26,851 nucleotides of DNA, from contig NEEC01000346.1 of the NCBI GenBank assembly GCA_002189035.1, positions 1-26,851 of the forward strand, read 5' to 3'. The notes beneath the pieces are model-generated. The model did not search any database, was not told where the DNA came from, and worked only from the letters and a program-made list of their open reading frames with translations. The translations under genes were made by a program, and so were the position numbers. The DNA is from Utricularia gibba. Taxonomy: Eukaryota; Plantae; Magnoliophyta. How positions within the stretch are numbered: position 1 is the first letter of the stretch; each line of letters opens with the position of its first letter. Positions 1 to 26,851 of this stretch are shown piece after piece.

Positions 1-957
1 TTTTTTTCCACGGCCGTATGGCCTTGTGGCTGCTGCTCGAGCACGCGGCATTAACCAAGCCCATGTGGCCTCGTGGTGCTGCTGCGTATGCACACGGGCT
101 GGGGGTCGCGCCGGGCATGAGCCCAAAGTCAGTTTTAGCCCGGCGAAAAAAGGGATGCATTTCTTAGCGTTGGGTTATCACGAGCCGCCTAATTTTTTTT
201 CGTGGAACACCATCTAGTTTTGTGGGGGGGCGCTCTCGAGGGGCCCTTGGCTTGGGCCCGGGTTCGGTCTGGCTGATGAGCCCACTCTGGTCCCACTCGG
301 CGAAAATCGTGACACATTTGTTGAAATTAGGATGTCACGTGCACCCAACACGGTTTTTTCAACAACACGCTTTATACTTGTGGAGACGCTCTCGGGGGGC
401 ACTCGAATCTTCCCATACGTCGTACCAGGCTCGAGCGTAAAGTCATTGTAGCCCGGCAAAGAAAGTGATGCATTTATTAACTTTGGGTTGTCACGAGCCG
501 CCTAAATGGTTTTCCATGGAACACCTTCTAGTTTTGGGGGGGAGGGGAGCGGGCGCTGCGCCTCGTCCGGGCCCGGGAGCCCGGTCCCGTCCGACTCGAC
601 GAAAATCGTGATGCATTTGTTGAAGTTAGGATGTCACGAGAACCGCACACGTTTTTTTTTCAACAACACACTTTATACTTAAGGAGGAGCTCTCGGGGGG
701 CACCCTGATCGGGCCGGAGGTCGTGCGAACTCAGGCCCAAAGTCAGCAGTAGCGCGCCAAAAAAAGTGATGCATTTATTAACGTTGGGTTGTGACGAGAC
801 GCGTATATGGTTTTTGAAGGAACACCTCCTCGTATTGAGGCGGGCGCTCTCGAGGGGCCCTTGGCCCGGGCCCCGGGTTCGGACGGGCTCATGGGCCCAC
901 TCGACGAAAATCATGATGCATTTGTTGAAATTGGGATGTCACGTGCACCCCACATTT

Positions 958-1206
958 GTTGAGCGAGGACGGCCAATTTTAGAGACTCGATGGGCCATTC
1001 TTCGATCAGCGTCCTACTATCTAGTTCAAACTCAAAGTCACATTATTCTTGCACAATTTCGTATGAATGAATATGGGATATGATCCGTTGGAAGCCCAAG
1101 TGTTAGAGAATTTTACTGAATCTGCTGAGCAAGGGGTTGTGAGTTCATAACAGCTGTTGAAACCTCTCCAGGGTGGTGTGCGTGGCGTGATGAGCTTTCT
1201 ACAATG
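958..1206 (+). pseudogene. PIF/Harbinger-type DDE transposase (DDE_Tnp_4 / HARBI1-like) C-terminal fragment, frameshifted; copy 1
   Basis: Manual translation in three segments: 958-1053 VERGRPILETRWAILRSASYYLVQTQSHIILA; 1049-1135 LHNFV*MNMGYDPLEAQVLENFTESAEQG; 1135-1206 GCEFITAVETSPGWCAWRDELSTM. This matches the remembered plant PIF/Harbinger transposase C-terminus (IERCFGLLKxRWAILR..S.YP...Q..II.ACCLLHNF.R.....DP.E ... W..WRD.LA..M) in motif order and spacing. Homology is convincing from 976 (ILETRW); 958-975 is tentative. Recognised from memory, not by search. Confidence 0.82.
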
Positions 1207-1322
1207 ACAAAAAAAATATTTTTATAATCATGTGATATATGTTTATTAAAATATAAATAATGTAAATACGTTAGTTATTAAAGCATATACTACATGTGAA
1301 AGTTTCTTAGTTTTTAATTTTA

Positions 1323-2026
1323 TTAGCATTCGACCCTTAGTTATACTTTGGATGGAGTGTGCATTTTTATTTTAATCATTTTAATTAGCATTCGATCCTT
1401 GGTTAAGATTCCAATCGAGTGTATATTTTTTATTTGAACGATTCTATTTGCATTCGATTCTAAGATATGATGCGGATCGAGCGTATATTTTTTATTTTAA
1501 TATTTTTATTGGCTTTCGGTCTTTAGACATGATTCGGATCGAGTGGAGATGGTTTACTTGAAACTTGTGTTAACGCTCGATCCTTAGGAGCAATGTGGAG
1601 CGTGTTTACATTGCAAGGGCACACGGGCGTGGGTTGTGCGTAAACCACGCCCGTGTGGCATGGCATTGTAATGTATACACGTTCTAAATTGCTCCTAACG
1701 GTGGAACGCTAATTAAGATTTAAAATAAATGAATATGCACTCGATCCAAAGTATACCTAAGGATCTAAGGCTAATAAAAATATGAGAGTGAAAAATATAC
1801 GCTCGATCCGCAGCATACCTAACGTTCGAATGCTAATAAAAAATATTAAAATAAAAAATACGCGCTCGATCCGCATTATACTTAAGGATCGAATGATAAT
1901 AAAAATATTTAAAGTAAAAAAATAGCAAATATGATCTGAATCATAACCAAGGATCGAATGCTAATTAAATTGACTAAAGTAAAAATACACACTCCATCCA
2001 AAGTACAACTGAGGATCAAATGGTAA
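1323..2026. repeat. ~62-bp modular subrepeats of the foldback arms (5 in the left arm, 6 inverted in the right arm); representative copy
   Basis: Left-arm TTAGCATTCGATCC-like starts at 1323, 1385, 1447, 1509, 1570. Right-arm CCTAAGGATCGAATGCTAA-like starts at 1694, 1756, 1818, 1881, 1946, 2008. Spacings are 61-65 bp. Confidence 0.9.
1620..1657. other. GC-rich perfect hairpin at the apex of the foldback; representative copy
   Basis: CACACGGGCGTGG (1620-1632) and CCACGCCCGTGTG (1645-1657) are exact reverse complements around a 12-nt loop, GTTGTGCGTAAA. Confidence 0.92.
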
Positions 2027-2125
2027 TAATTAAGTCAAAGAAGCTTTCACAGTTATCCTACGGTTTAATAAATAATGTATTTCAATTATTTATAATTTAA
2101 TAAACCTATATCATATGATTATGAT

Positions 2126-2282
2126 TAGAGATGGGCCTGGGTTGGATCCATTCAGGTTCGGACCCAACCCGATGAAATTCTGGGTATTACAGTTTGCATG
2201 ACCCATGGGGTTGTCTTTCTGTTCAACCCGAACGGGTTAAACCCTACGGGTTTTGATTGGGCCCGAACCGAACCAAGGGTTT
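2126..2282 (+). mobile_element. Orphan hAT-like transposon terminus with AACCC(G)/GGGTT subterminal motifs; representative copy
   Basis: Begins TAGAGATGGGC, resembling hAT TIR starts (Ac C/TAGGGATGAAA, Tam3 TAAAGATGTGAA). It is followed by clustered AACCCG, AAACCC, TGACCC, CGGGTT and ACCGAACC motifs. No matching opposite TIR is present in the monomer. Other copies start at 4461, 6796, 9129, 11463, 13795, 16126, 18458, 20792, 23116, 25434. Confidence 0.4.
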
Positions 2283-2350
2283 ATCAATTTTATTTTTTAT
2301 TTTTGGCTTATTGTATTTTATGGTTGTTTTTCTTTTTTTCCACGGCCGTA

Positions 2351-2432
2351 TGGCCTTGTGGCTGCTGCTCGAGCACGCGGGCATTAACCAAGCCCATGTG
2401 GCCTCGTGGTGCTGCTGCGTATGCACACGGGC
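2351..2432. repeat. Degenerate ~48-bp direct duplication in the linker; representative copy
   Basis: TGGCCTTGTGG-CTGCTGCTCGAGCACGCGGGC (from 2351) versus TGGCCTCGTGGTGCTGCTGCGTATGCACACGGGC (from 2399). Confidence 0.65.
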
Positions 2433-2433
2433 T

Positions 2434-3285
2434 GGGGGTCGCGCCGGGCATGAGCCCAAAGTCAGTTTTAGCCCGGCGAAAAAAGGGATGCATTTCTTAG
2501 CGTTGGGTTATCACGAGCCGCCTAATTTTTTTTCGTGGAACACCATCTAGTTTTGTGGGGGGGCGCTCTCGAGGGGCCCTTGGCTTGGGCCCCGGGTTCG
2601 GTCTGGCTGATGAGCCCACTCTGGTCCCACTCGGCGAAAATCGTGACACATTTGTTGAAATTAGGATGTCACGTGCACCCAACACGGTTTTTTCAACAAC
2701 ACGCTTTATACTTGTGGAGACGCTCTCGGGGGCACTCGAATCTTCCCATACGTCGTACCAGGCTCGAGCGTAAAGTCATTGTAGCCCGGCAAAGAAAGTG
2801 ATGCATTTATTAACTTTGGGTTGTCACGAGCCGCCTAAATGGTTTTCCATGGAACACCTTCTAGTTTTGGGGGGGAGGGGAGCGGGCGCTGCGCCTCGTC
2901 CGGGCCCCGGGAGCCCGGTCCCGTCCGACTCGACGAAAATCGTGATGCATTTGTTGAAGTTAGGATGTCACGAGAACCGCACACGGTTTTTTTCAACAAC
3001 ACACTTTATACTTAAGGAGGAGCTCTCGGTGGGGCACCCTGATCGAGCCGGAGGTCGTGCCGAACTCAGGCCCAAAGTCAGCAGTAGCGCGCCAAAAAAA
3101 GTGATGCATTTATTAACGTTGGGTTGTGACGAGACGCGTATATGGTTTTTGAAGGAACACCTCCTCGTATTGAGGCGGGCGCTCTCGAGGGGCCCTTGGC
3201 CCGGGCCCCGGGTTCGGACGGGCTCATGGGCCCACTCGACGAAAATCATGATGCATTTGTTGAAATTGGGATGTCACGTGCACCC
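2434..3285. repeat. GC-rich block of diverged ~150-bp subrepeats in alpha/beta alternation (~300-bp dimer); representative copy
   Basis: The anchor GATGCATTT(A/G/C)TT...GG(T/A)TGTCACG recurs at 2487 (alpha1), 2645 (beta1, GACACATTT), 2800 (alpha2), 2944 (beta2), 3103 (alpha3) and 3250 (beta3, truncated); spacings are 158, 155, 144, 159, 147. The same block is in every monomer: 101-950, 4769-5620, 7104-7954, 9436-10288, 11769-12619, 14102-14951, 16433-17282, 18765-19616, 21100-21947, 23424-24262, 25742-26587. Confidence 0.93.
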
Positions 3286-3292
3286 CACATTT

Positions 3293-3541
3293 GTTGAGCG
3301 AGGACGGCCAATTTTAGAGACTCGATGGGCCATTCTTCGATCAGCGTCCTACTATCTAGTTCAAACTCAAAGTCACATTATTCTTGCACAATTTCGTATG
3401 AATGAATATGGGATATGATCCGTTGGAAGCCCAAGTGTTAGAGAATTTTACTGAATCTGCTGAGCAAGGGGTTGTGAGTTCATAACAGCTGTTGAAACCT
3501 CTCCAGGGTGGTGTGCGTGGCGTGATGAGCTTTCTACAATG
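3293..3541 (+). pseudogene. PIF/Harbinger transposase C-terminal fragment; copy 2
   Basis: Same sequence and same lesions as 958-1206. Confidence 0.82.
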
Positions 3542-3558
3542 ACAAAAAAAATATTTTT

Positions 3559-4457
3559 ATAATCATGTGATATATGTTTATTAAAATATAAATAATGTAA
3601 ATACGTTAGTTATTAAAGCATATACTACATGTGAAAGTTTCTTAGTTTTTAATTTTATTAGCATTCGACCCTTAGTTATACTTTGGATGGAGTGTGCATT
3701 TTTATTTTAATCATTTTAATTAGCATTCGATCCTTGGTTAAGATTCCAATCGAGTGTATATTTTTTATTTGAACGATTCTATTTGCATTCGATTCTAAGA
3801 TATGATGCGGATCGAGCGTATATTTTTTATTTTAATATTTTTATTGGCTTTCGGTCTTTAGACATGATTCGGATCGAGTGGAGATGGTTTACTTGAAACT
3901 TGTGTTAACGCTCGATCCTTAGGAGCAATGTGGAGCGTGTTTACATTGCAAGGGCACACGGGCGTGGGTTGTGCGTAAACCACGCCCGTGTGGCATGGCA
4001 TTGTAATGTATACACGTTCTAAATTGCTCCTAACGGTGGAACGCTAATTAAGATTTAAAATAAATGAATATGCACTCGATCCAAAGTATACCTAAGGATC
4101 TAAGGCTAATAAAAATATGAGAGTGAAAAATATACGCTCGATCCGCAGCATACCTAACGTTCGAATGCTAATAAAAAATATTAAAATAAAAAATACGCGC
4201 TCGATCCGCATTATACTTAAGGATCGAATGATAATAAAAATATTTAAAGTAAAAAAATAGCAAATATGATCTGAATCATAACCAAGGATCGAATGCTAAT
4301 TAAATTGACTAAAGTAAAAATACACACTCCATCCAAAGTACAACTGAGGATCAAATGGTAATAATTAAGTCAAAGAAGCTTTCACAGTTATCCTACGGTT
4401 TAATAAATAATGTATTTCAATTATTTATAATTTAATAAACCTATATCATATGATTAT
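3559..4457. mobile_element. Foldback inverted repeat; copy 2
   Basis: Same sequence as 1224-2122. Confidence 0.7.
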
Positions 4458-5627
4458 GATTAGAGATGGGCCTGGGTTGGATCCATTCAGGTTCGGACCC
4501 AACCCGATGAAATTCTGGGTATTACAGTTTGCATGACCCATGGGGTTGTCTTTCTGTTCAACCCGAACGGGTTAAACCCTACGGGTTTTGATTGGGCCCG
4601 AACCGAACCAAGGGTTTATCAATTTTATTTTTTATTTTTGGCTTATTGTATTTTATGGTTGTTTTTCTTTTTTTCCACGGCCGTATGGCCTTGTGGCTGC
4701 TGCTCGAGCACGCGGGCATTAACCAAGCCCATGTGGCCTCGTGGTGCTGCTGCGTATGCACACGGGCTGGGGGTCGCGCCGGGCATGAGCCCAAAGTCAG
4801 TTTTAGCCCGGCGAAAAAAGGGATGCATTTCTTAGCGTTGGGTTATCACGAGCCGCCTAATTTTTTTTCGTGGAACACCATCTAGTTTTGTGGGGGGCGC
4901 TCTCGAGGGGCCCTTGGCTTGGGCCCCGGGTTCGGTCTGGCTGATGAGCCCACTCTGGTCCCACTCGGCGAAAATCGTGACACATTTGTTGAAATTAGGA
5001 TGTCACGTGCACCCAACACGGTTTTTTCAACAACACGCTTTATACTTGTGGAGACGCTCTCGGGGGGCACTCGAATCTTCCCATACGTCGTACCAGGCTC
5101 GAGCGTAAAGTCATTGTAGCCCGGCAAAGAAAGTGATGCATTTATTAACTTTGGGTTGTCACGAGCCGCCTAAATGGTTTTCCATGGAACACCTTCTAGT
5201 TTTGGGGGGGAGGGGAGCGGGCGCTGCGCCTCGTCCGGGCCCCGGGAGCCCGGTCCCGTCCGACTCGACGAAAATCGTGATGCATTTGTTGAAGTTAGGA
5301 TGTCACGAGAACCGCACACGGTTTTTTTCAACAACACACTTTATACTTAAGGAGGAGCTCTCGGTGGGGCACCCTGATCGAGCCGGAGGTCGTGCCGAAC
5401 TCAGGCCCAAAGTCAGCAGTAGCGCGCCAAAAAAAGTGATGCATTTATTAACGTTGGGTTGTGACGAGACGCGTATATGGTTTTTGAAGGAACACCTCCT
5501 CGTATTGAGGCGGGCGCTCTCGAGGGGCCCTTGGCCCGGGCCCCGGGTTCGGACGGGCTCATGGGCCCACTCGACGAAAATCATGATGCATTTGTTGAAA
5601 TTGGGATGTCACGTGCACCCCACATTT

Positions 5628-5876
5628 GTTGAGCGAGGACGGCCAATTTTAGAGACTCGATGGGCCATTCTTCGATCAGCGTCCTACTATCTAGTTCAAA
5701 CTCAAAGTCACATTATTCTTGCACAATTTCGTATGAATGAATATGGGATATGATCCGTTGGAAGCCCAAGTGTTAGAGAATTTTACTGAATCTGCTGAGC
5801 AAGGGGTTGTGAGTTCATAACAGCTGTTGAAACCTCTCCAGGGTGGTGTGCGTGGCGTGATGAGCTTTCTACAATG
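5628..5876 (+). pseudogene. PIF/Harbinger transposase C-terminal fragment; copy 3
   Basis: Same sequence and lesions as 958-1206. Confidence 0.82.
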
Positions 5877-5893
5877 ACAAAAAAAATATTTTT

Positions 5894-6792
5894 ATAATCA
5901 TGTGATATATGTTTATTAAAATATAAATAATGTAAATACGTTAGTTATTAAAGCATATACTACATGTGAAAGTTTCTTAGTTTTTAATTTTATTAGCATT
6001 CGACCCTTAGTTATACTTTGGATGGAGTGTGCATTTTTATTTTAATCATTTTAATTAGCATTCGATCCTTGGTTAAGATTCCAATCGAGTGTATATTTTT
6101 TATTTGAACGATTCTATTTGCATTCGATTCTAAGATATGATGCGGATCGAGCGTATATTTTTTATTTTAATATTTTTATTGGCTTTCGGTCTTTAGACAT
6201 GATTCGGATCGAGTGGAGATGGTTTACTTGAAACTTGTGTTAACGCTCGATCCTTAGGAGCAATGTGGAGCGTGTTTACATTGCAAGGGCACACGGGCGT
6301 GGGTTGTGCGTAAACCACGCCCGTGTGGCATGGCATTGTAATGTATACACGTTCTAAATTGCTCCTAACGGTGGAACGCTAATTAAGATTTAAAATAAAT
6401 GAATATGCACTCGATCCAAAGTATACCTAAGGATCTAAGGCTAATAAAAATATGAGAGTGAAAAATATACGCTCGATCCGCAGCATACCTAACGTTCGAA
6501 TGCTAATAAAAAATATTAAAATAAAAAATACGCGCTCGATCCGCATTATACTTAAGGATCGAATGATAATAAAAATATTTAAAGTAAAAAAATAGCAAAT
6601 ATGATCTGAATCATAACCAAGGATCGAATGCTAATTAAATTGACTAAAGTAAAAATACACACTCCATCCAAAGTACAACTGAGGATCAAATGGTAATAAT
6701 TAAGTCAAAGAAGCTTTCACAGTTATCCTACGGTTTAATAAATAATGTATTTCAATTATTTATAATTTAATAAACCTATATCATATGATTAT
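5894..6792. mobile_element. Foldback inverted repeat; copy 3
   Basis: Same sequence as 1224-2122. Confidence 0.7.
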
Positions 6793-7961
6793 GATTAGAG
6801 ATGGGCCTGGGTTGGATCCATTCAGGTTCGGACCCAACCCGATGAAATTCTGGGTATTACAGTTTGCATGACCCATGGGGTTGTCTTTCTGTTCAACCCG
6901 AACGGGTTAAACCCTACGGGTTTTGATTGGGCCCGAACCGAACCAAGGGTTTATCAATTTTATTTTTTATTTTTGGCTTATTGTATTTTATGGTTGTTTT
7001 TCTTTTTTTCCACGGCCGTATGGCCTTGTGGCTGCTGCTCGAGCACGCGGGCATTAACCAAGCCCATGTGGCCTCGTGGTGCTGCTGCGTATGCACACGG
7101 GCTGGGGGTCGCGCCGGGCATGAGCCCAAAGTCAGTTTTAGCCCGGCGAAAAAAGGGATGCATTTCTTAGCGTTGGGTTATCACGAGCCGCCTAATTTTT
7201 TTTCGTGGAACACCATCTAGTTTTGTGGGGGGCGCTCTCGAGGGGCCCTTGGCTTGGGCCCCGGGTTCGGTCTGGCTGATGAGCCCACTCTGGTCCCACT
7301 CGGCGAAAATCGTGACACATTTGTTGAAATTAGGATGTCACGTGCACCCAACACGGTTTTTTCAACAACACGCTTTATACTTGTGGAGACGCTCTCGGGG
7401 GGCACTCGAATCTTCCCATACGTCGTACCAGGCTCGAGCGTAAAGTCATTGTAGCCCGGCAAAGAAAGTGATGCATTTATTAACTTTGGGTTGTCACGAG
7501 CCGCCTAAATGGTTTTCCATGGAACACCTTCTAGTTTTGGGGGGGAGGGAGCGGGCGCTGCGCCTCGTCCGGGCCCCGGGAGCCCGGTCCCGTCCGACTC
7601 GACGAAAATCGTGATGCATTTGTTGAAGTTAGGATGTCACGAGAACCGCACACGGTTTTTTTCAACAACACACTTTATACTTAAGGAGGAGCTCTCGGGG
7701 GGGCACCCTGATCGAGCCGGAGGTCGTGCCGAACTCAGGCCCAAAGTCAGCAGTAGCGCGCCAAAAAAAGTGATGCATTTATTAACGTTGGGTTGTGACG
7801 AGACGCGTATATGGTTTTTGAAGGAACACCTCCTCGTATTGAGGCGGGCGCTCTCGAGGGGCCCTTGGCCCGGGCCCCGGGTTCGGACGGGCTCATGGGC
7901 CCACTCGACGAAAATCATGATGCATTTGTTGAAATTGGGATGTCACGTGCACCCCACATTT

Positions 7962-8210
7962 GTTGAGCGAGGACGGCCAATTTTAGAGACTCGATGGGCC
8001 ATTCTTCGATCAGCGTCCTACTATCTAGTTCAAACTCAAAGTCACATTATTCTTGCACAATTTCGTATGAATGAATATGGGATATGATCCGTTGGAAGCC
8101 CAAGTGTTAGAGAATTTTACTGAATCTGCTGAGCAAGGGGTTGTGAGTTCATAACAGCTGTTGAAACCTCTCCAGGGTGGTGTGCGTGGCGTGATGAGCT
8201 TTCTACAATG
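7962..8210 (+). pseudogene. PIF/Harbinger transposase C-terminal fragment; copy 4
   Basis: Same sequence and lesions as 958-1206. Confidence 0.82.
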
Positions 8211-8226
8211 ACAAAAAAATATTTTT

Positions 8227-9125
8227 ATAATCATGTGATATATGTTTATTAAAATATAAATAATGTAAATACGTTAGTTATTAAAGCATATACTACATGT
8301 GAAAGTTTCTTAGTTTTTAATTTTATTAGCATTCGACCCTTAGTTATACTTTGGATGGAGTGTGCATTTTTATTTTAATCATTTTAATTAGCATTCGATC
8401 CTTGGTTAAGATTCCAATCGAGTGTATATTTTTTATTTGAACGATTCTATTTGCATTCGATTCTAAGATATGATGCGGATCGAGCGTATATTTTTTATTT
8501 TAATATTTTTATTGGCTTTCGGTCTTTAGACATGATTCGGATCGAGTGGAGATGGTTTACTTGAAACTTGTGTTAACGCTCGATCCTTAGGAGCAATGTG
8601 GAGCGTGTTTACATTGCAAGGGCACACGGGCGTGGGTTGTGCGTAAACCACGCCCGTGTGGCATGGCATTGTAATGTATACACGTTCTAAATTGCTCCTA
8701 ACGGTGGAACGCTAATTAAGATTTAAAATAAATGAATATGCACTCGATCCAAAGTATACCTAAGGATCTAAGGCTAATAAAAATATGAGAGTGAAAAATA
8801 TACGCTCGATCCGCAGCATACCTAACGTTCGAATGCTAATAAAAAATATTAAAATAAAAAATACGCGCTCGATCCGCATTATACTTAAGGATCGAATGAT
8901 AATAAAAATATTTAAAGTAAAAAAATAGCAAATATGATCTGAATCATAACCAAGGATCGAATGCTAATTAAATTGACTAAAGTAAAAATACACACTCCAT
9001 CCAAAGTACAACTGAGGATCAAATGGTAATAATTAAGTCAAAGAAGCTTTCACAGTTATCCTACGGTTTAATAAATAATGTATTTCAATTATTTATAATT
9101 TAATAAACCTATATCATATGATTAT
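8227..9125. mobile_element. Foldback inverted repeat; copy 4
   Basis: Same sequence as 1224-2122. Confidence 0.7.
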
Positions 9126-10295
9126 GATTAGAGATGGGCCTGGGTTGGATCCATTCAGGTTCGGACCCAACCCGATGAAATTCTGGGTATTACAGTTTGC
9201 ATGACCCATGGGGTTGTCTTTCTGTTCAACCCGAACGGGTTAAACCCTACGGGTTTTGATTGGGCCCGAACCGAACCAAGGGTTTATCAATTTTATTTTT
9301 TATTTTTGGCTTATTGTATTTTATGGTTGTTTTTCTTTTTTTCCACGGCCGTATGGCCTTGTGGCTGCTGCTCGAGCACGCGGCATTAACCAAGCCCATG
9401 TGGCCTCGTGGTGCTGCTGCGTATGCACACGGGCTGGGGGTCGCGCCGGGCATGAGCCCAAAGTCAGTTTTAGCCCGGCGAAAAAAGGGATGCATTTCTT
9501 AGCGTTGGGTTATCACGAGCCGCCTAATTTTTTTTCGTGGAACACCATCTAGTTTTGTGGGGGGGCGCTCTCGAGGGGCCCTTGGCTTGGGCCCCGGGTT
9601 CGGTCTGGCTGATGAGCCCACTCTGGTCCCACTCGGCGAAAATCGTGACACATTTGTTGAAATTAGGATGTCACGTGCACCCAACACGGTTTTTTCAACA
9701 ACACGCTTTATACTTGTGGAGACGCTCTCGGGGGGCACTCGAATCTTCCCATACGTCGTACCAGGCTCGAGCGTAAAGTCATTGTAGCCCGGCAAAGAAA
9801 GTGATGCATTTATTAACTTTGGGTTGTCACGAGCCGCCTAAATGGTTTTCCATGGAACACCTTCTAGTTTTGGGGGGGAGGGGAGCGGGCGCTGCGCCTC
9901 GTCCGGGCCCCGGGAGCCCGGTCCCGTCCGACTCGACGAAAATCGTGATGCATTTGTTGAAGTTAGGATGTCACGAGAACCGCACACGGTTTTTTTCAAC
10001 AACACACTTTATACTTAAGGAGGAGCTCTCGGTGGGGCACCCTGATCGAGCCGGAGGTCGTGCCGAACTCAGGCCCAAAGTCAGCAGTAGCGCGCCAAAA
10101 AAAGTGATGCATTTATTAACGTTGGGTTGTGACGAGACGCGTATATGGTTTTTGAAGGAACACCTCCTCGTATTGAGGCGGGCGCTCTCGAGGGGCCCTT
10201 GGCCCGGGCCCCGGGTTCGGACGGGCTCATGGGCCCACTCGACGAAAATCATGATGCATTTGTTGAAATTGGGATGTCACGTGCACCCCACATTT

Positions 10296-10544
10296 GTTGA
10301 GCGAGGACGGCCAATTTTAGAGACTCGATGGGCCATTCTTCGATCAGCGTCCTACTATCTAGTTCAAACTCAAAGTCACATTATTCTTGCACAATTTCGT
10401 ATGAATGAATATGGGATATGATCCGTTGGAAGCCCAAGTGTTAGAGAATTTTACTGAATCTGCTGAGCAAGGGGTTGTGAGTTCATAACAGCTGTTGAAA
10501 CCTCTCCAGGGTGGTGTGCGTGGCGTGATGAGCTTTCTACAATG
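10296..10544 (+). pseudogene. PIF/Harbinger transposase C-terminal fragment; copy 5
   Basis: Same sequence and lesions as 958-1206. Confidence 0.82.
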
Positions 10545-10560
10545 ACAAAAAAAATTTTTT

Positions 10561-11459
10561 ATAATCATGTGATATATGTTTATTAAAATATAAATAATGT
10601 AAATACGTTAGTTATTAAAGCATATACTACATGTGAAAGTTTCTTAGTTTTTAATTTTATTAGCATTCGACCCTTAGTTATACTTTGGATGGAGTGTGCA
10701 TTTTTATTTTAATCATTTTAATTAGCATTCGATCCTTGGTTAAGATTCCAATCGAGTGTATATTTTTTATTTGAACGATTCTATTTGCATTCGATTCTAA
10801 GATATGATGCGGATCGAGCGTATATTTTTTATTTTAATATTTTTATTGGCTTTCGGTCTTTAGACATGATTCGGATCGAGTGGAGATGGTTTACTTGAAA
10901 CTTGTGTTAACGCTCGATCCTTAGGAGCAATGTGGAGCGTGTTTACATTGCAAGGGCACACGGGCGTGGGTTGTGCGTAAACCACGCCCGTGTGGCATGG
11001 CATTGTAATGTATACACGTTCTAAATTGCTCCTAACGGTGGAACGCTAATTAAGATTTAAAATAAATGAATATGCACTCGATCCAAAGTATACCTAAGGA
11101 TCTAAGGCTAATAAAAATATGAGAGTGAAAAATATACGCTCGATCCGCAGCATACCTAACGTTCGAATGCTAATAAAAAATATTAAAATAAAAAATACGC
11201 GCTCGATCCGCATTATACTTAAGGATCGAATGATAATAAAAATATTTAAAGTAAAAAAATAGCAAATATGATCTGAATCATAACCAAGGATCGAATGCTA
11301 ATTAAATTGACTAAAGTAAAAATACACACTCCATCCAAAGTACAACTGAGGATCAAATGGTAATAATTAAGTCAAAGAAGCTTTCACAGTTATCCTACGG
11401 TTTAATAAATAATGTATTTCAATTATTTATAATTTAATAAACCTATATCATATGATTAT
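10561..11459. mobile_element. Foldback inverted repeat; copy 5
   Basis: Same sequence as 1224-2122. Confidence 0.7.
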
Positions 11460-12875: not shown

Positions 12876-12892
12876 ACAAAAAAAATATTTTT

Positions 12893-15207: not shown

Positions 15208-15224
15208 ACAAAAAAAATATTTTT

Positions 15225-16122
15225 ATAATCATGTGATATATGTTTATTAAAATATAAATAATGTAAATACGTTAGTTATTAAAGCATATACTACATGTGA
15301 AAGTTTCTTAGTTTTTAATTTTATTAGCATTCGACCCTTAGTTATACTTTGGATGGAGTGTGCATTTTTATTTTAATCATTTTAATTAGCATTCGATCCT
15401 TGGTTAAGATTCCAATCGAGTGTATATTTTTTATTTGAACGATTCTATTTGCATTCGATTCTAAGATATGATGCGGATCGAGCGTATATTTTTTATTTTA
15501 ATATTTTTATTGGCTTTCGGTCTTTAGACATGATTCGGATCGAGTGGAGATGGTTTACTTGAAACTTGTGTTAACGCTCGATCCTTAGGAGCAATGTGGA
15601 GCGTGTTTACATTGCAAGGGCACACGGGCGTGGGTTGTGCGTAAACCACGCCCGTGTGGCATGGCATTGTAATGTATACACGTTCTAAATTGCTCCTAAC
15701 GGTGGAACGCTAATTAAGATTTAAAATAAATGAATATGCACTCGATCCAAAGTATACCTAAGGATCTAAGGCTAATAAAAATATGAGAGTGAAAAATATA
15801 CGCTCGATCCGCAGCATACCTAACGTTCGAATGCTAATAAAAATATTAAAATAAAAAATACGCGCTCGATCCGCATTATACTTAAGGATCGAATGATAAT
15901 AAAAATATTTAAAGTAAAAAAATAGCAAATATGATCTGAATCATAACCAAGGATCGAATGCTAATTAAATTGACTAAAGTAAAAATACACACTCCATCCA
16001 AAGTACAACTGAGGATCAAATGGTAATAATTAAGTCAAAGAAGCTTTCACAGTTATCCTACGGTTTAATAAATAATGTATTTCAATTATTTATAATTTAA
16101 TAAACCTATATCATATGATTAT
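15225..16122. mobile_element. Foldback inverted repeat; copy 7
   Basis: As copy 1, 1 bp shorter (A run). Confidence 0.7.
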
Positions 16123-17289
16123 GATTAGAGATGGGCCTGGGTTGGATCCATTCAGGTTCGGACCCAACCCGATGAAATTCTGGGTATTACAGTTTGCATG
16201 ACCCATGGGGTTGTCTTTCTGTTCAACCCGAACGGGTTAAACCCTACGGGTTTTGATTGGGCCCGAACCGAACCAAGGGTTTATCAATTTTATTTTTTAT
16301 TTTTGGCTTATTGTATTTTATGGTTGTTTCTTTTTTTTCCACGGCCGTATGGCCTTGTGGCTGCTGCTCGAGCACGCGGGCATTAACCAAGCCCATGTGG
16401 CCTCGTGGTGCTGCTGCGTATGCACACGGGCTGGGGGTCGCGCCGGGCATGAGCCCAAAGTCAGTTTTAGCCCGGCGAAAAAAGGGATGCATTTCTTAGC
16501 GTTGGGTTATCACGAGCCGCCTAATTTTTTTTCGTGGAACACCATCTAGTTTTGTGGGGGGGCGCTCTCGAGGGGCCCTTGGCTTGGGCCCCGGGTCGGT
16601 CTGGCTGATGAGCCCACTCTGGTCCCACTCGGCGAAAATCGTGACACATTTGTTGAAATTAGGATGTCACGTGCACCCAACACGGTTTTTTCAACAACAC
16701 GCTTTATACTTGTGGAGACGCTCTCGGGGGCACTCGAATCTTCCCATACGTCGTACCAGGCTCGAGCGTAAAGTCATTGTAGCCCGGCAAAGAAAGTGAT
16801 GCATTTATTAACTTTGGGTTGTCACGAGCCGCCTAAATGGTTTTCCATGGAACACCTTCTAGTTTTGGGGGGAGGGGAGCGGGCGCTGCGCCTCGTCCGG
16901 GCCCCGGGAGCCCGGTCCCGTCCGACTCGACGAAAATCGTGATGCATTTGTTGAAGTTAGGATGTCACGAGAACCGCACACGGTTTTTTTCAACAACACA
17001 CTTTATACTTAAGGAGGAGCTCTCGGTGGGGCACCCTGATCGAGCCGGAGGTCGTGCCGAACTCAGGCCCAAAGTCAGCAGTAGCGCGCCAAAAAAAGTG
17101 ATGCATTTATTAACGTTGGGTTGTGACGAGACGCGTATATGGTTTTTGAAGGAACACCTCCTCGTATTGAGGCGGGCGCTCTCGAGGGGCCCTTGGCCCG
17201 GGCCCCGGGTTCGGACGGGCTCATGGGCCCACTCGACGAAAATCATGATGCATTTGTTGAAATTGGGATGTCACGTGCACCCCACATTT

Positions 17290-17537
17290 GTTGAGCGAGG
17301 ACGGCCAATTTTAGAGACTCGATGGGCCATTCTTCGATCAGCGTCCTACTATCTAGTTCAAACTCAAAGTCACATTATTCTTGCACAATTTCGTATGAAT
17401 GAATATGGGATATGATCCGTTGGAAGCCCAAGTGTTAGAGAATTTTACTGAATCTGCTGAGCAAGGGTTGTGAGTTCATAACAGCTGTTGAAACCTCTCC
17501 AGGGTGGTGTGCGTGGCGTGATGAGCTTTCTACAATG
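17290..17537 (+). pseudogene. PIF/Harbinger transposase C-terminal fragment; copy 8
   Basis: As copy 1 but one G shorter in CAAGGGGTT. Confidence 0.82.
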
Positions 17538-17554
17538 ACAAAAAAAATATTTTT

Positions 17555-18454
17555 ATAATCATGTGATATATGTTTATTAAAATATAAATAATGTAAATAC
17601 GTTAGTTATTAAAGCATATACTACATGTGAAAGTTTCTTAGTTTTTAATTTTATTAGCATTCGACCCTTAGTTATACTTTGGATGGAGTGTGCATTTTTA
17701 TTTTAATCATTTTAATTAGCATTCGATCCTTGGTTAAGATTCCAATCGAGTGTATATTTTTTATTTGAACGATTCTATTTGCATTCGATTCTAAGATATG
17801 ATGCGGATCGAGCGTATATTTTTTATTTTAATATTTTTATTGGCTTTCGGTCTTTAGACATGATTCGGATCGAGTGGAGATGGTTTACTTGAAACTTGTG
17901 TTAACGCTCGATCCTTAGGAGCAATGTGGAGCGTGTTTACATTGCAAGGGCACACGGGCGTGGGTTGTGCGTAAACCACGCCCGTGTGGCATGGCATTGT
18001 AATGTATACACGTTCTAAATTGCTCCTAACGGTGGAACGCTAATTAAGATTTAAAATAAATGAATATGCACTCGATCCAAAGTATACCTAAGGATCTAAG
18101 GCTAATAAAAATATGAGAGTGAAAAATATACGCTCGATCCGCAGCATACCTAACGTTCGAATGCTAATAAAAAATATTAAAAATAAAAAATACGCGCTCG
18201 ATCCGCATTATACTTAAGGATCGAATGATAATAAAAATATTTAAAGTAAAAAAATAGCAAATATGATCTGAATCATAACCAAGGATCGAATGCTAATTAA
18301 ATTGACTAAAGTAAAAATACACACTCCATCCAAAGTACAACTGAGGATCAAATGGTAATAATTAAGTCAAAGAAGCTTTCACAGTTATCCTACGGTTTAA
18401 TAAATAATGTATTTCAATTATTTATAATTTAATAAACCTATATCATATGATTAT
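17555..18454. mobile_element. Foldback inverted repeat; copy 8
   Basis: As copy 1, 1 bp longer (A run). Confidence 0.7.
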
Positions 18455-19623
18455 GATTAGAGATGGGCCTGGGTTGGATCCATTCAGGTTCGGACCCAAC
18501 CCGATGAAATTCTGGGTATTACAGTTTGCATGACCCATGGGGTTGTCTTTCTGTTCAACCCGAACGGGTTAAACCCTACGGGTTTTGATTGGGCCCGAAC
18601 CGAACCAAGGGTTTATCAATTTTATTTTTTTTTTTGGCTTATTGTATTTTATGGTTGTTTTTCTTTTTTTCCACGGCCGTATGGCCTTGTGGCTGCTGCT
18701 CGAGCACGCGGGCATTAACCAAGCCCATGTGGCCTCGTGGTGCTGCTGCGTATGCACACGGGCTGGGGGTCGCGCCGGGCATGAGCCCAAAGTCAGTTTT
18801 AGCCCGGCGAAAAAAGGGATGCATTTCTTAGCGTTGGGTTATCACGAGCCGCCTAATTTTTTTTCGTGGAACACCATCTAGTTTTGTGGGGGGCGCTCTC
18901 GAGGGGCCCTTGGCTTGGGCCCCGGGTTCGGTCTGGCTGATGAGCCCACTCTGGTCCCACTCGGCGAAAATCGTGACACATTTGTTGAAATTAGGATGTC
19001 ACGTGCACCCAACACGGTTTTTTCAACAACACGCTTTATACTTGTGGAGACGCTCTCGGGGGGCACTCGAATCTTCCCATACGTCGTACCAGGCTCGAGC
19101 GTAAAGTCATTGTAGCCCGGCAAAGAAAGTGATGCATTTATTAACTTTGGGTTGTCACGAGCCGCCTAAATGGTTTTCCATGGAACACCTTCTAGTTTTG
19201 GGGGGGAGGGGAGCGGGCGCTGCGCCTCGTCCGGGCCCCGGGAGCCCGGTCCCGTCCGACTCGACGAAAATCGTGATGCATTTGTTGAAGTTAGGATGTC
19301 ACGAGAACCGCACACGGTTTTTTTCAACAACACACTTTATACTTAAGGAGGAGCTCTCGGTGGGGCACCCTGATCGAGCCGGAGGTCGTGCCGAACTCAG
19401 GCCCAAAGTCAGCAGTAGCGCGCCAAAAAAAGTGATGCATTTATTAACGTTGGGTTGTGACGAGACGCGTATATGGTTTTTGAAGGAACACCTCCTCGTA
19501 TTGAGGCGGGCGCTCTCGAGGGGCCCTTGGCCCGGGCCCCGGGTTCGGACGGGCTCATGGGCCCACTCGACGAAAATCATGATGCATTTGTTGAAATTGG
19601 GATGTCACGTGCACCCCACATTT

Positions 19624-19872
19624 GTTGAGCGAGGACGGCCAATTTTAGAGACTCGATGGGCCATTCTTCGATCAGCGTCCTACTATCTAGTTCAAACTCA
19701 AAGTCACATTATTCTTGCACAATTTCGTATGAATGAATATGGGATATGATCCGTTGGAAGCCCAAGTGTTAGAGAATTTTACTGAATCTGCTGAGCAAGG
19801 GGTTGTGAGTTCATAACAGCTGTTGAAACCTCTCCAGGGTGGTGTGCGTGGCGTGATGAGCTTTCTACAATG
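19624..19872 (+). pseudogene. PIF/Harbinger transposase C-terminal fragment; copy 9
   Basis: Same sequence and lesions as 958-1206. Confidence 0.82.
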
Positions 19873-19889
19873 ACAAAAAAAATATTTTT

Positions 19890-20788
19890 ATAATCATGTG
19901 ATATATGTTTATTAAAATATAAATAATGTAAATACGTTAGTTATTAAAGCATATACTACATGTGAAAGTTTCTTAGTTTTTAATTTTATTAGCATTCGAC
20001 CCTTAGTTATACTTTGGATGGAGTGTGCATTTTTATTTTAATCATTTTAATTAGCATTCGATCCTTGGTTAAGATTCCAATCGAGTGTATATTTTTTATT
20101 TGAACGATTCTATTTGCATTCGATTCTAAGATATGATGCGGATCGAGCGTATATTTTTTATTTTAATATTTTTATTGGCTTTCGGTCTTTAGACATGATT
20201 CGGATCGAGTGGAGATGGTTTACTTGAAACTTGTGTTAACGCTCGATCCTTAGGAGCAATGTGGAGCGTGTTTACATTGCAAGGGCACACGGGCGTGGGT
20301 TGTGCGTAAACCACGCCCGTGTGGCATGGCATTGTAATGTATACACGTTCTAAATTGCTCCTAACGGTGGAACGCTAATTAAGATTTAAAATAAATGAAT
20401 ATGCACTCGATCCAAAGTATACCTAAGGATCTAAGGCTAATAAAAATATGAGAGTGAAAAATATACGCTCGATCCGCAGCATACCTAACGTTCGAATGCT
20501 AATAAAAAATATTAAAATAAAAAATACGCGCTCGATCCGCATTATACTTAAGGATCGAATGATAATAAAAATATTTAAAGTAAAAAAATAGCAAATATGA
20601 TCTGAATCATAACCAAGGATCGAATGCTAATTAAATTGACTAAAGTAAAAATACACACTCCATCCAAAGTACAACTGAGGATCAAATGGTAATAATTAAG
20701 TCAAAGAAGCTTTCACAGTTATCCTACGGTTTAATAAATAATGTATTTCAATTATTTATAATTTAATAAACCTATATCATATGATTAT
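19890..20788. mobile_element. Foldback inverted repeat; copy 9
   Basis: Same sequence as 1224-2122. Confidence 0.7.
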
Positions 20789-21954
20789 GATTAGAGATGG
20801 GCCTGGGTTGGATCCATTCAGGTTCGGACCCAACCCGATGAAATTCTGGGTATTACAGTTTGCATGACCCATGGGGTTGTCTTTCTGTTCAACCCGAACG
20901 GGTTAAACCCTACGGGTTTTGATTGGGCCCGAACCGAACCAAGGGTTTATCAATTTTATTTTTTATTTTTGGCTTATTGTATTTTATGGTTGTTTTTCTT
21001 TTTTTCCACGGCCGTATGGCCTTGTGGCTGCTGCTCGAGCACGCGGGCATTAACCAAGCCCATGTGGCCTCGTGGTGCTGCTGCGTATGCACACGGGCTG
21101 GGGGTCGCGCCGGGCATGAGCCCAAAGTCAGTTTTAGCCCGGCGAAAAAAGGGATGCATTTCTTAGCGTTGGGTTATCACGAGCCGCCTAATTTTTTTTC
21201 GTGGAACACCATCTAGTTTTGTGGGGGGGCGCTCTCGAGGGGCCCTTGGCTTGGGCCCCGGGTTCGGTCTGGCTGATGAGCCCACTCTGGTCCCACTCGG
21301 CGAAAATCGTGACACATTTTTGAAATTAGGATGTCACGTGCACCCAACACGGTTTTTTCAACAACACGCTTTATACTTGTGGAGACGCTCTCGGGGGGCA
21401 CTCGAATCTTCCCATACGTCGTACCAGGCTCGAGCGTAAAGTCATTGTAGCCCGGCAAAGAAAGTGATGCATTTATTAACTTTGGGTTGTCACGAGCCGC
21501 CTAAATGGTTTTCCATGGAACACCTTCTAGTTTTGGGGGGAGGGGAGCGGGCGCTGCGCCTCGTCCGGGCCCCGGGAGCCCGGTCCCGTCCGACTCGACG
21601 AAAATCGTGATGCATTTGTTGAAGTTAGGATGTCACGAGAACCGCACACGTTTTTTTCAACAACACACTTTATACTTAAGGAGGAGCTCTCGGGGGCACC
21701 CTGATCGAGCCGGAGGTCGTGCCGAACTCAGGCCCAAAGTCAGCAGTAGCGCGCCAAAAAAAGTGATGCATTTATTAACGTTGGGTTGTGACGAGACGCG
21801 TATATGGTTTTTGAAGGAACACCTCCTCGTATTGAGGCGGGCGCTCTCGAGGGGCCCTTGGCCCGGGCCCCGGGTTCGGACGGGCTCATGGGCCCACTCG
21901 ACGAAAATCATGATGCATTTGTTGAAATTGGGATGTCACGTGCACCCCACATTT

Positions 21955-22200
21955 GTTGAGCGGGACGGCCAATTTTAGAGACTCGATGGGCCATTCTTCG
22001 ATCAGCGTCCTACTATCTAGTTCAAACTCAAAGTCACATTATTCTTGCACAATTTCGTATGAATGAATATGGGATATGATCCGTTGGAAGCCCAAGTGTT
22101 AGAGAATTTTACTGAATCTGCTGAGCAAGGGGTTGTGAGTTCATAACAGCTGTTGAAACCTCTCCAGGGTGGTGTGTGGCGTGATGAGCTTTCTACAATG
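21955..22200 (+). pseudogene. PIF/Harbinger transposase C-terminal fragment; copy 10
   Basis: As copy 1 with extra small deletions (CGAGGA>CGGGA; TGTGCGTGG>TGTGTGG). Confidence 0.8.
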
Positions 22201-22216
22201 ACAAAAAAAATATTTT

Positions 22217-23112
22217 ATAATCATGTGATATATGTTTATTAAAATATAAATAATGTAAATACGTTAGTTATTAAAGCATATACTACATGTGAAAGTTTCT
22301 TAGTTTTTAATTTTATTAGCATTCGACCCTTAGTTATACTTTGGATGGAGTGTGCATTTTTATTTTAATCATTTTAATTAGCATTCGATCCTTGGTTAAG
22401 ATTCCAATCGAGTGTATATTTTTTATTTGAACGATTCTATTTGCATTCGATTCTAAGATATGATGCGGATCGAGCGTATATTTTTTATTTTAATATTTTA
22501 TTGGCTTTCGGTCTTTAGACATGATTCGGATCGAGTGGAGATGGTTTACTTGAAACTTGTTTAACGCTCGATCCTTAGGAGCAATGTGGAGCGTGTTTAC
22601 ATTGCAAGGCACACGGGCGTGGGTTGTGCGTAAACCACGCCCGTGTGGCATGGCATTGTAATGTATACACGTTCTAAATTGCTCCTAACGGTGGAACGCT
22701 AATTAAGATTTAAAATAAATGAATATGCACTCGATCCAAAGTATACCTAAGGATCTAAGGCTAATAAAAATATGAGAGTGAAAAATATACGCTCGATCCG
22801 CAGCATACCTAACGTTCGAATGCTAATAAAAAATATTAAAATAAAAAATACGCGCTCGATCCGCATTATACTTAAGGATCGAATGATAATAAAAATATTT
22901 AAAGTAAAAAAATAGCAAATATGATCTGAATCATAACCAAGGATCGAATGCTAATTAAATTGACTAAAGTAAAAATACACACTCCATCCAAAGTACAACT
23001 GAGGATCAAATGGTAATAATTAAGTCAAAGAAGCTTTCACAGTTATCCTACGGTTTAATAAATAATGTATTTCAATTATTTATAATTTAATAAACCTATA
23101 TCATATGATTAT
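22217..23112. mobile_element. Foldback inverted repeat; copy 10
   Basis: As copy 1, 3 bp shorter through 1-bp deletions. Confidence 0.7.
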
Positions 23113-24269
23113 GATTAGAGATGGGCCTGGGTTGGATCCATTCAGGTTCGGACCCAACCCGATGAAATTCTGGGTATTACAGTTTGCATGACCCATGGGG
23201 TTGTCTTTCTGTTCAACCCGAACGGGTTAAACCCTACGGGTTTTGATTGGGCCCGAACCGAACCAAGGGTTTATCAATTTTATTTTTTTTTTTTGGCTTA
23301 TTGTATTTTATGGTTGTTTTTCTTTTTTTCCACGGCCGTATGGCCTTGTGGCTGCTGCTCGAGCACGCGGGCATTAACCAAGCCCATGTGGCCTCGTGGT
23401 GCTGCTGCGTATGCACACGGGCTGGGGGTCGCGCCGGGCATGAGCCCAAAGTCAGTTTTAGCCCGGCGAAAAAAGGGATGCATTTCTTAGCGTTGGGTTA
23501 TCACGAGCCGCCTAATTTTTTTTCGTGGAACACCATCTAGTTTTGTGGGGGGCGCTCTCGAGGGGCCCTTGGCTTGGGCCCCGGGTTCGGTCTGGATGAG
23601 CCCACTCTGGTCCCACTCGGCGAAAATCGTGACACATTTGTTGAAATTAGGATGTCACGTGCACCCAACACGGTTTTTTCAACAACACGCTTTATACTTG
23701 TGGAGACGCTCTCGGGGGGCACTCGAATCTTCCCATACGTCGTACCAGGCTCGAGCGTAAAGTCATTGTAGCCGGCAAAGAAAGTGATGCATTTATTAAC
23801 TTTGGGTTGTCACGAGCCGCCTAAATGGTTTTCCATGGAACACCTTAGTTTTGGGGGGAGGGGAGCGGGCGCTGCGCCTCGTCCGGGCCCCGGGAGCCCG
23901 GTCCCGTCCGACTCGACGAAAATCGTGATGCATTTGTTGAAGTTAGGATGTCACGAGAACCGCACACGTTTTTTTCAACAACACACTTTATACTTAAGGA
24001 GGAGCTCTCGGGGGCACCCTGATCGGCCGGAGGTCGTGCCGAACTCGGGCCCAAAGTCAGCAGTAGCGCGCCAAAAAAGTGATGCATTTATTAACGTTGG
24101 GTTGTGACGAGACGCGTATATGGTTTTTGAAGGAACACCCCTCGTATTGAGGCGGGCGCTCTCGAGGGGCCCTTGGCCCGGGCCCCGGGTTCGGACGGGC
24201 TCATGGGCCCACTCGACGAAAATCATGATGCATTTGTTGAAATTGGGATGTCACGTGCACCCCACATTT

Positions 24270-24518
24270 GTTGAGCGAGGACGGCCAATTTTAGAGACTC
24301 GATGGGCCATTCTTCGATCAGCGTCCTACTATCTAGTTCAAACTCAAAGTCACATTATTCTTGCACAATTTCGTATGAATGAATATGGGATATGATCCGT
24401 TGGAAGCCCAAGTGTTAGAGAATTTTACTGAATCTGCTGAGCAAGGGGTTGTGAGTTCATAACAGCTGTTGAAACCTCTCCAGGGTGGTGTGCGTGGCGT
24501 GATGAGCTTTCTACAATG
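24270..24518 (+). pseudogene. PIF/Harbinger transposase C-terminal fragment; copy 11
   Basis: Same sequence and lesions as 958-1206. Confidence 0.82.
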
Positions 24519-24535
24519 ACAAAAAAAATATTTTT

Positions 24536-25430
24536 ATAATCATGTGATATATGTTTATTAAAATATAAATAATGTAAATACGTTAGTTATTAAAGCATAT
24601 ACTACATGTGAAAGTTTCTTAGTTTTTAATTTTATTAGCATTCGACCCTTAGTTATACTTTGGATGGAGTGTGCATTTTTATTTTAATCATTTTAATTAG
24701 CATTCGATCCTTGGTTAAGATTCCAATCGAGTGTATATTTTTTATTTGAACGATTCTATTTGCATTCGATTCTAAGATATGATGCGGATCGAGCGTATAT
24801 TTTTTATTTTAATATTTTTATTGGCTTTCGGTCTTTAGACATGATTCGGATCGAGTGGAGATGGTTTACTTGAAACTTGTGTTAACGCTCGATCCTTAGG
24901 AGCAATGTGGAGCGTGTTTACATTGCAAGGGCACACGGGCGTGGGTTGTGCGTAAACCACGCCGTGTGGCATGGCATTGTAATGTATACACGTTCTAAAT
25001 TGCTCCTAACGGTGGAACGCTAATTAATTTAAAATAAATGAATATGCACTCGATCCAAAGTATACCTAAGGATCTAAGGCTAATAAAAATATGAGAGTGA
25101 AAAATATACGCTCGATCCGCAGCATACCTAACGTTCGAATGCTAATAAAAATATTAAAATAAAAAATACGCGCTCGATCCGCATTATACTTAAGGATCGA
25201 ATGATAATAAAAATATTTAAAGTAAAAAAATAGCAAATATGATCTGAATCATAACCAAGGATCGAATGCTAATTAAATTGACTAAAGTAAAAATACACAC
25301 TCCATCCAAAGTACAACTGAGGATCAAATGGTAATAATTAAGTCAAAGAAGCTTTCACAGTTATCCTACGGTTTAATAAATAATGTATTTCAATTATTTA
25401 TAATTTAATAAACCTATATCATATGATTAT
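24536..25430. mobile_element. Foldback inverted repeat; copy 11
   Basis: As copy 1, 4 bp shorter through small deletions. Confidence 0.7.
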
Positions 25431-26594
25431 GATTAGAGATGGGCCTGGGTTGGATCCATTCAGGTTCGGACCCAACCCGATGAAATTCTGGGTATTACAG
25501 TTTGCATGACCCATGGGGTTGTCTTTCTGTTCAACCCGAACGGGTTAAACCCTACGGGTTTTGATTGGGCCCGAACCGAACCAAGGGTTTATCAATTTTA
25601 TTTTTTATTTTTGGCTTATTGTATTTTATGGTTGTTTTTCTTTTTTTCCACGGCCGTATGGCCTTGTGGCTGCTGCTCGAGCACGCGGGCATTAACCAAG
25701 CCCATGTGGCCTCGTGGTGCTGCTGCGTATGCACACGGGCTGGGGTCGCGCCGGGCATGAGCCCAAAGTCAGTTTTAGCCCGGCGAAAAAAGGGATGCAT
25801 TTCTTAGCGTTGGGTTATCACGAGCCGCCTAATTTTTTTTCGTGGAACACCATCTAGTTTTGGGGGGGGCGCTCTCGAGGGGCCCTTGGCTTGGGCCCCG
25901 GGTTCGGTCTGGCTGATGAGCCCACTCTGGTCCCACTCGGCGAAAATCGTGACACATTTGTTGAAATTAGGATGTCACGTGCACCCAACACGGTTTTTTC
26001 AACAACACGCTTTATACTTGTGGAGACGCTCTCGGGGGGCACTCGAATCTTCCCATACGTCGTACCAGGCTCGAGCGTAAAGTCATTGTAGCCCGGCAAA
26101 GAAAGTGATGCATTTATTAACTTTGGGTTGTCACGAGCCGCCTAAATGGTTTTCCATGGAACACCTTCTAGTTTTGGGGGAGGGGAGCGGGCGCTGCGCC
26201 TCGTCCGGGCCCGGGAGCCCGGTCCCGTCCGACTCGACGAAAATCGTGATGCATTTGTTGAAGTTAGGATGTCACGAGAACCGCACACGTTTTTTTCAAC
26301 AACACACTTTATACTTAAGGAGGAGCTCTCGGGGGGGGCACCCTGATCGGCCGGAGGTCGTGCCGAACTCGGGCCCAAAAGTCAGCAGTAGCGCGCCAAA
26401 AAAAGTGATGCATTTATTAACGTTGGGTTGTGACGAGACGCGTATATGGTTTTTGAAGGAACACCTCCTCGTATTGAGGCGGGCGCTCTCGAGGGGCCTT
26501 GGCCCGGGCCCCGGGTTCGGACGGGCTCATGGGCCCACTCGACGAAAATCATGATGCATTTTTGAAATTGGGATGTCACGTGCACCCCACATTT

Positions 26595-26841
26595 GTTGAG
26601 CGAGGACGGCCAATTTTAGAGACTCGATGGGCCATTCTTCGATCAGCGTCCTACTATCTAGTTCAAACTCAAAGTCACATTATTCTTGCACAATTTCGTA
26701 TGAATGAATATGGGATATGATCCGTTGGAAGCCCAAGTGTTAGAGAATTTTACTGAATCTGCTGAGCAAGGGTTGTGAGTTCATAACAGCTGTTGAAACC
26801 TCTCCAGGGTGTGTGCGTGGCGTGATGAGCTTTCTACAATG
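26595..26841 (+). pseudogene. PIF/Harbinger transposase C-terminal fragment; copy 12
   Basis: As copy 1 with two 1-bp losses in G runs. Confidence 0.8.
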
Positions 26842-26851
26842 ACAAAAAAAA

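Follow-up and report, generated by a model that had tools for sequence, protein, structure and literature searches.

A homogeneous 2.33-kb compound satellite of Utricularia gibba that combines an older tandem repeat with fragments of class II transposons

The human D4Z4 macrosatellite has a 3.3-kb unit made of older repeat families (LSau, hhspm3) and a retro-copied gene and arranged head-to-tail, and the long-monomer St satellites of potato are centromeric. Compound monomers, in which part of a transposon is joined to a genomic tandem repeat and the copies are homogenised to about 99%, have been described for Sobo, potato and rye (PMC8091179). For Sobo of Solanum bulbocastanum, passages in PMC8091179 and PMC9659126 give a 4.7-kb monomer that is composed of a portion of a long terminal repeat (LTR) retrotransposon together with a tandem repeat from the genome. 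Table 1 of PMC9659126 lists the potato long-monomer satellites St3-58, St3-238, St3-294 and St18, and it also tabulates satellites derived from class II elements, namely MITEs (miniature inverted-repeat transposable elements), foldback elements and En/Spm. Examples are the Tetris foldback TIR-220 arrays of Drosophila virilis, the MITE-derived D1100 of rye and ENSAT1, which comes from En/Spm in Arabidopsis (PMC9659126). Here we analysed a repeat of this general kind in contig NEEC01000346.1 of Utricularia gibba (assembly GCA_002189035.1), whose whole stretch of 26,851 nt is called the window below. We consider it likely that the window is a real tandem array from the nuclear genome, built of a compound satellite with long monomers, which arose by segmental tandem amplification of a satellite/transposon boundary and then grew by unequal crossing-over.

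The window is filled entirely by a 2.33-kb unit repeated 11.5 times head-to-tail, with all copies in one orientation, although a copy count in a repeat-only contig is unreliable because overlaps between reads can slip by whole units. A 30-mer anchor taken from position 1317 occurred 11 times, and its spacings were 2335, 2335, 2333, 2334, 2332, 2332, 2330, 2335, 2327 and 2319. The HindIII site AAGCTT was also found 11 times, which means one site per unit, the first of them at 2041. Alignment of the ten complete monomers showed 99.87-100% identity at aligned bases, a value that has to be read with the fact that polishing with multi-mapping reads can homogenise copies. The two halves of the unit differ in base composition, with a GC content of 0.51-0.59 in the GC-rich half vs 0.24-0.40 in the AT-rich half. 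Both contig ends fall within a unit, so the contig is repeat only. An initial annotation, made from the letters of the window, had claimed 11.5 co-oriented copies, a single AAGCTT per unit (2041-2046) and alternation of a GC-rich and an AT-rich half, and had suggested that the satellite could be young. Anchor spacing and alignment agreed with the first of these claims, and the site count and the GC values agreed with the next two. The copy identity supports the suggestion of youth, as the array is very homogeneous and hence young or strongly homogenised. The array and the parts of its representative unit were as follows, and about 140 bp per unit remained unassigned.

1-26851, + strand: whole array, with a phase-shifted partial unit (1-2335), then ten full units and an incomplete one at the end
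2336-4670, + strand: representative unit of 2,335 bp, equal to the consensus length
2336-2431, + strand: GC-rich stretch with two direct repeats of about 48 nt (D1/D2) that are 77% identical
2432-3286, + strand: older satellite block of about 855 bp, with six subrepeats of about 150 bp or about 2.8 A+B dimers
2467-2624, + strand: subrepeat A1
2625-2779, + strand: subrepeat B1
2780-2923, + strand: subrepeat A2
2924-3082, + strand: subrepeat B2
3083-3229, + strand: subrepeat A3
3230-3286, + strand: subrepeat B3, cut short after about 57 nt
3287-3483 (952-1148 in the first unit), + strand: dead C-terminal tail of a PIF/Harbinger (DDE_Tnp_4 / Plant_tran) transposase, assigned by phmmer and tblastn
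3559-4457, no strand given: foldback element with inverted repeats I1-I14, direct families D1, D3, D5 and D6, and a Tandem Repeats Finder (TRF) period of 62-63
4461-4625, + strand: orphan transposon-like end, which opens with TAGAGATGGGCCTGGG and continues with short GGGTT/AACCC palindromic motifs
4626-4670, + strand: T-rich linker with a GC content of 0.18, from direct reading of the sequence

By this anatomy the repeat is a compound long-monomer satellite of the Sobo type, since kilobase monomers stand head-to-tail, a transposon part is combined with an older tandem repeat, and the copies are homogenised to about 99% or more. In the passages on Sobo cited above, Sobo is likewise a homogenised and recently amplified repeat with a kilobase monomer (4.7 kb vs 2.33 kb here) made of a transposon fragment and a tandem repeat. 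But its transposon part is the LTR of Sore1, whereas the present unit has a class II Harbinger tail, a foldback element and an orphan end, and Sobo is a single locus placed by fluorescence in situ hybridization (FISH), whereas the present unit is known from a repeat-only contig. The potato St satellites are alike in their long transposon-derived monomers and very high copy identity, but they come from Ty3/gypsy LTR elements and not from class II parts. Tetris, D1100 and ENSAT1 are alike in carrying class II or foldback sequence in tandem arrays, but there a part of a single element, frequently the internal or terminal repeats that it carries, became the monomer, whereas here several unrelated fragments and an older satellite were co-amplified. 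D4Z4 differs in having a functional open reading frame (ORF), DUX4, whereas only a dead transposase tail is present here. So the composite kilobase satellite of an older ~150-bp satellite and class II debris, as the initial annotation had put it, was recovered in the unit anatomy, and the annotation was apt in likening it to Sobo and to the long-monomer satellites of potato. Its view that class II content would be the unusual part is weakened by the MITE, foldback and En/Spm satellites in PMC9659126 and by the compound monomers in PMC8091179. The unit belongs to an already-described kind of satellite by every feature testable here, and what is particular to it is that an older satellite is mixed with three fragments of class II elements and that the founding breakpoint is still legible. 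A literature search, which did not include the original Sobo paper (Tek et al. 2005) and the U. gibba long-read genome paper (Lan et al. 2017), found no publication describing the 2.33-kb repeat.

Within the satellite block, A-type and B-type subrepeats, each about 145-160 bp long, alternate, and the two types are clearly homologous to one another. The A+B dimers were 303-313 bp long and 60-89% alike by segment, and alignment of the three dimers gave a mean column identity of 65%. A common 29-nt core is present six times per unit, and its pattern matched 70 times in the window vs 0 times in shuffles, which bears out the older ~150-bp satellite that had been read from the sequence before. Dimers 1 and 3 have in common an 89%-identical block of 64 nt (2558-2621 and 3174-3237), where dimer 2 has a different sequence, and this block is a trace of an older periodicity of about 616 bp (two dimers) in the parent satellite. 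Because the subrepeats are only 60-89% alike while the whole units are ~100% alike, the satellite is old and the amplification that took it up is young. The GC-rich stretch in front of the block is not part of the satellite; its local alignment with the A and B subrepeats was no better than that of shuffles. The satellite core pattern had 0 matches in a metagenome scan. The observed/expected CpG ratio of the satellite block was 1.03, so there was no depletion.

The transposase tail begins where the satellite block ends. A 47-residue open piece was searched with phmmer against 1.84 billion proteins, and it gave three matches with E<=0.001, of which the best two carry DDE_Tnp_4 and Plant_tran. 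One of these best matches, P0002, is a protein from a Logan assembly, and tblastn of P0002 onto the unit gave two alignments. One frame covered 958-1053, with 72% identity over 32 aa, and the frame after it covered 1046-1129, with 79% over 28 aa, and reached the C-terminus of P0002. By this analysis the reading frame shifts once, near 1046-1053, and is interrupted by an in-frame stop at 1064, and only the last ~60 residues of the transposase are retained. Similarity at the protein level thus identifies the tail as Harbinger, and the phmmer matches with DDE_Tnp_4 together with tblastn confirmed the Harbinger fragment of the initial annotation. The tail was also 54% identical over 39 aa to a DDE_Tnp_4 protein of Sesamum latifolium, and this Sesamum-like sequence would be weakly in keeping with nuclear DNA of a plant in the order Lamiales. 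The piece was too short for Pfam, which detected no family in it directly. Features of an intact Harbinger copy (full ORFs, terminal inverted repeats and a 3-bp TAA/TTA target duplication) were not found, as the fragment opens within an ORF where the satellite ends, carries the frameshift and the stop, and is not enclosed by a pair of inverted repeats. The third phmmer match, P0003, is 257 aa long, contains five internal repeats and belongs to no real Pfam family, and it is probably a translated tandem repeat of another genome that was matched by chance.

The AT-rich half of the unit is dominated by the foldback element. Its outer arms are 99 nt long and 79% complementary, its inner arms consist of modules of 62-65 bp, with four in the left arm and five to six in the right arm, and a GC-rich hairpin tip lies at 3941-4006; the HindIII site of the unit falls within the element at 4376. 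Folding of the 899 nt as single-stranded DNA gave -230 kcal/mol vs a shuffle mean of -80 (z = -28.6). The element therefore has a foldback-type structure, with long inverted arms of tandem subrepeats that fold into one hairpin. A target-site duplication was not found at its edges, where the flanks (1215-1223 and 2123-2131 in the first unit) do not match. The observed/expected CpG ratio was 1.68 in this AT-rich element (3559-4457), which came from TCGATCC / GGATCGA in every 62-bp module, and these motifs may represent a conserved, putative protein-binding dyad. Rfam gave a weak match to MIR6143 (RF04002) at the foldback tip (1596-1686), with 28.2 bits vs a gathering threshold of 75 and E = 0.023. 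This likeness is probably just a resemblance of one hairpin to another, and the MIR6143 family itself might be derived from a related foldback element or MITE.

The orphan end that follows carries a terminal-looking motif, which matched 11 times in the window, once per unit and on the + strand only, and an inverted partner was not found in the window within 3 mismatches. The fold of this end was weak (z = -2.1), and its internal palindromes are short only. A Harbinger-type or hAT-type paired end was considered for 2126-2290 of the first unit and was rejected, as only short internal palindromes are present. So the hAT-like end of the initial annotation stood as a terminal-looking motif occurring once per unit, but paired short hAT termini with an 8-bp target duplication did not, and the hAT label came from a look-alike terminus only.

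The join between the satellite and the transposase tail is the most informative position in the unit. At 3286/3287 (951/952 in the first unit) subrepeat B3 breaks off before it is complete, and from the following base on the sequence belongs to the transposase reading frame, and this was found in every unit. About 60 nt of the subrepeat are missing from the unit, and neither a terminal inverted repeat nor a target duplication was found at the junction. Because the position lies within both a reading frame and a subrepeat, with ~60 nt missing and without terminal inverted repeat or target duplication, it is a breakpoint and not an insertion site. An arrangement with the cargo cleanly inside one broken subrepeat was tried and rejected, as the ~60 nt are missing and the similarity of 2300-2431 to a subrepeat was at chance level. 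The satellite/Harbinger junction had 0 matches in a second metagenome scan.

The window itself demonstrates the array and its anatomy, as well as the junction, the near-identical copies and the structured variants, and from them we infer an order of events and a recombination mechanism. The ancestral locus would have been the edge of a ~150/300-bp satellite array that adjoined a nest of dead class II pieces, in which a Harbinger copy lay together with a foldback element and an orphan terminal fragment. A segment of 2.33 kb, with one end midway through the transposase gene and the other midway through a subrepeat, would then have been tandemly duplicated by an illegitimate (non-homologous) join, and this join would be the B3/transposase junction now present in each unit. 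Once two copies existed, unequal exchange between sister chromatids or homologues could have caused both growth and homogenisation, in a one-unit register first and later apparently in a three-unit register. The multi-unit register is proposed because of variants with a period of three units, which are described next.

Against the 2,335-bp consensus, the whole window had 9 substitutions, 62 deletions and 9 insertions. Nearly all differences were deletions of 1-3 bases, many of them in homopolymer runs, and they clustered at the 3' end of the contig, with 39 of the 62 in the last 2.5 units (19983-26851). This pattern looks like long-read consensus error at falling coverage and not like divergence, and the true divergence between units does not exceed a few hundredths of one percent. 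Sequence quality at 19983-26851 is low, which means that ORFs and motifs read there are unreliable. Three kinds of single-base difference stood apart from these deletions.

3030 and equivalents, + strand: T/G variant site, CTCGG[T]GGGG, with T in six units and a G run in six units
24047 and 26371, + strand: A>G substitution common to two neighbouring units, the last two
712, 24026 and 26350, + strand: second common change, in the first and last units

Along the array, starting with the head fragment and finishing with the tail fragment, the T/G site read G T T G T T G T T G G G. Of 924 arrangements, only 6 reach a non-constant run that keeps a period of 3 over ten units (p = 0.0065), and the length of a G run (2557 and equivalents), longer in units 1, 4 and 7, followed a period of 3 over 8 units (p = 0.07); a cruder lag statistic gave p ~0.1 for each of the two sites. 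The T/G, G-run and shared-substitution variants look like genuine ordered heterogeneity, and the G-T-T order is a hint of a three-unit (7-kb) higher order.

An array as uniform as this could also have come from a rolling circle, for which recombination between satellite monomers would release a circle with cargo, the circle would be copied into a concatemer, and the concatemer would re-integrate as a ready array. The near-identity of all copies suits such a single burst, the satellite on one side of the unit could provide the homology for excision, and the model was cited in the initial annotation for long-monomer plant satellites. But the B3/transposase junction is non-homologous and lacks ~60 nt, unlike the product of excision between monomers; copying of one monomeric circle would not be expected to give a period-3 run or changes common to neighbours; and no replication gene or origin-like feature was found with Rfam or with Pfam on 14 ORFs. 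Because the copies differ in an ordered, neighbour-shared fashion, a monomeric circle is excluded as the source of the variant pattern. We therefore regard this route as unlikely, and amplification through extrachromosomal circular DNA, as proposed earlier, is neither needed nor favoured given the structured variation among copies. The same ordering of variants bears on an assembly artefact or extrachromosomal element, that is a small circle, a plasmid-like molecule or a few copies unrolled into 11.5 copies. Such an origin would fit a contig of pure repeat without flanks, in which consensus-type deletions dominate (62 vs 9 substitutions, with 39/62 in the last 2.5 units). However, direct repeats in long reads mirror the molecule, whereas missed SMRTbell adapters lead to inverted copies, and reads of ~10 kb already cover about four units (the PacBio assembly of U. 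gibba had a mean subread length of 10.4 kb; PMC5793159, Table 2). The unit is also made of nuclear satellite and transposon debris, with no replicon genes and no plasmid match. Because the variants are ordered among copies, a chromosomal array is favoured over an unrolled small circle, and we hold the artefact to be very improbable.

Several points nevertheless weigh against the tandem amplification of a satellite/transposon boundary that we prefer. Polishing may have erased real differences, so the ~100% identity may exaggerate the youth of the array. The copy number within a repeat-only contig that contains no flanking unique DNA is unreliable, given whole-unit slippage of read overlaps. The three-unit periodicity is a hint from one clean site and one homopolymer-length site, each with p ~0.1 by the cruder statistic. 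At the junction, the cargo may have been inserted into one subrepeat and the ~60 nt deleted afterwards.

A function as a (peri)centromeric satellite, that is a CENH3-binding repeat of chromosomes with unassembled centromeres, is compatible with the origin by tandem amplification that we favour, but we think it improbable. Long-monomer, highly homogenised and chromosome-specific centromeric satellites exist in potato, and missing centromeres usually sit in repeat-only unplaced contigs. On the other side, the unit is without any centromere-specific feature, and the putative centromeric regions of U. gibba are said to lack satellite repeats, in a statement of PMC8333044 that cites the U. gibba long-read genome paper. 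As worded in that passage, the statement leans against a centromeric role for the assembled chromosomes. A bolder and equally improbable proposal would place the unit in the missing satellite fraction of unassembled centromeres, or would have the foldback element drive amplification by way of breaks that hairpins induce, and also supply a hairpin small-RNA pathway. If the centromeric part were true, the published view of satellite-free centromeres in U. gibba would be overturned, and the hairpin small-RNA pathway would act in a plant whose small-RNA and methylation system is reportedly atypical.

Searches for genes gave little in the window. Pfam on 14 ORFs from both strands found no family, apart from one weak chance match to EF_assoc_2, and an exact-sequence look-up of five window ORFs in the protein collection found them absent. 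No tRNA was found, Rfam gave no family above threshold, and a bacterial plasmid search gave no match. The array is without coding capacity, its effects are likely structural, as a heterochromatin block, and the 900-nt foldback in every unit is possibly a source of hairpin small RNA. The contig opens in a T run (1-7) and closes in an A run (26840-26851), and its end lies about 10 nt short of a foldback start. The position of this end near the foldback may be chance, or reads and assembly may be prone to break at the hairpin.

The process by which such units arise is already documented, so current understanding is unchanged by this array. What it adds is a clean and very young example of the birth of a long-unit satellite, in which the founding breakpoint can be read in each copy. 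Repeat-only contigs are also markers of assembly gaps, and the unit could be used as a probe for FISH or Southern blotting. U. gibba is famous for DNA shedding, and several near-identical kilobase arrays would show that tandem amplification is active there despite genome shrinkage.

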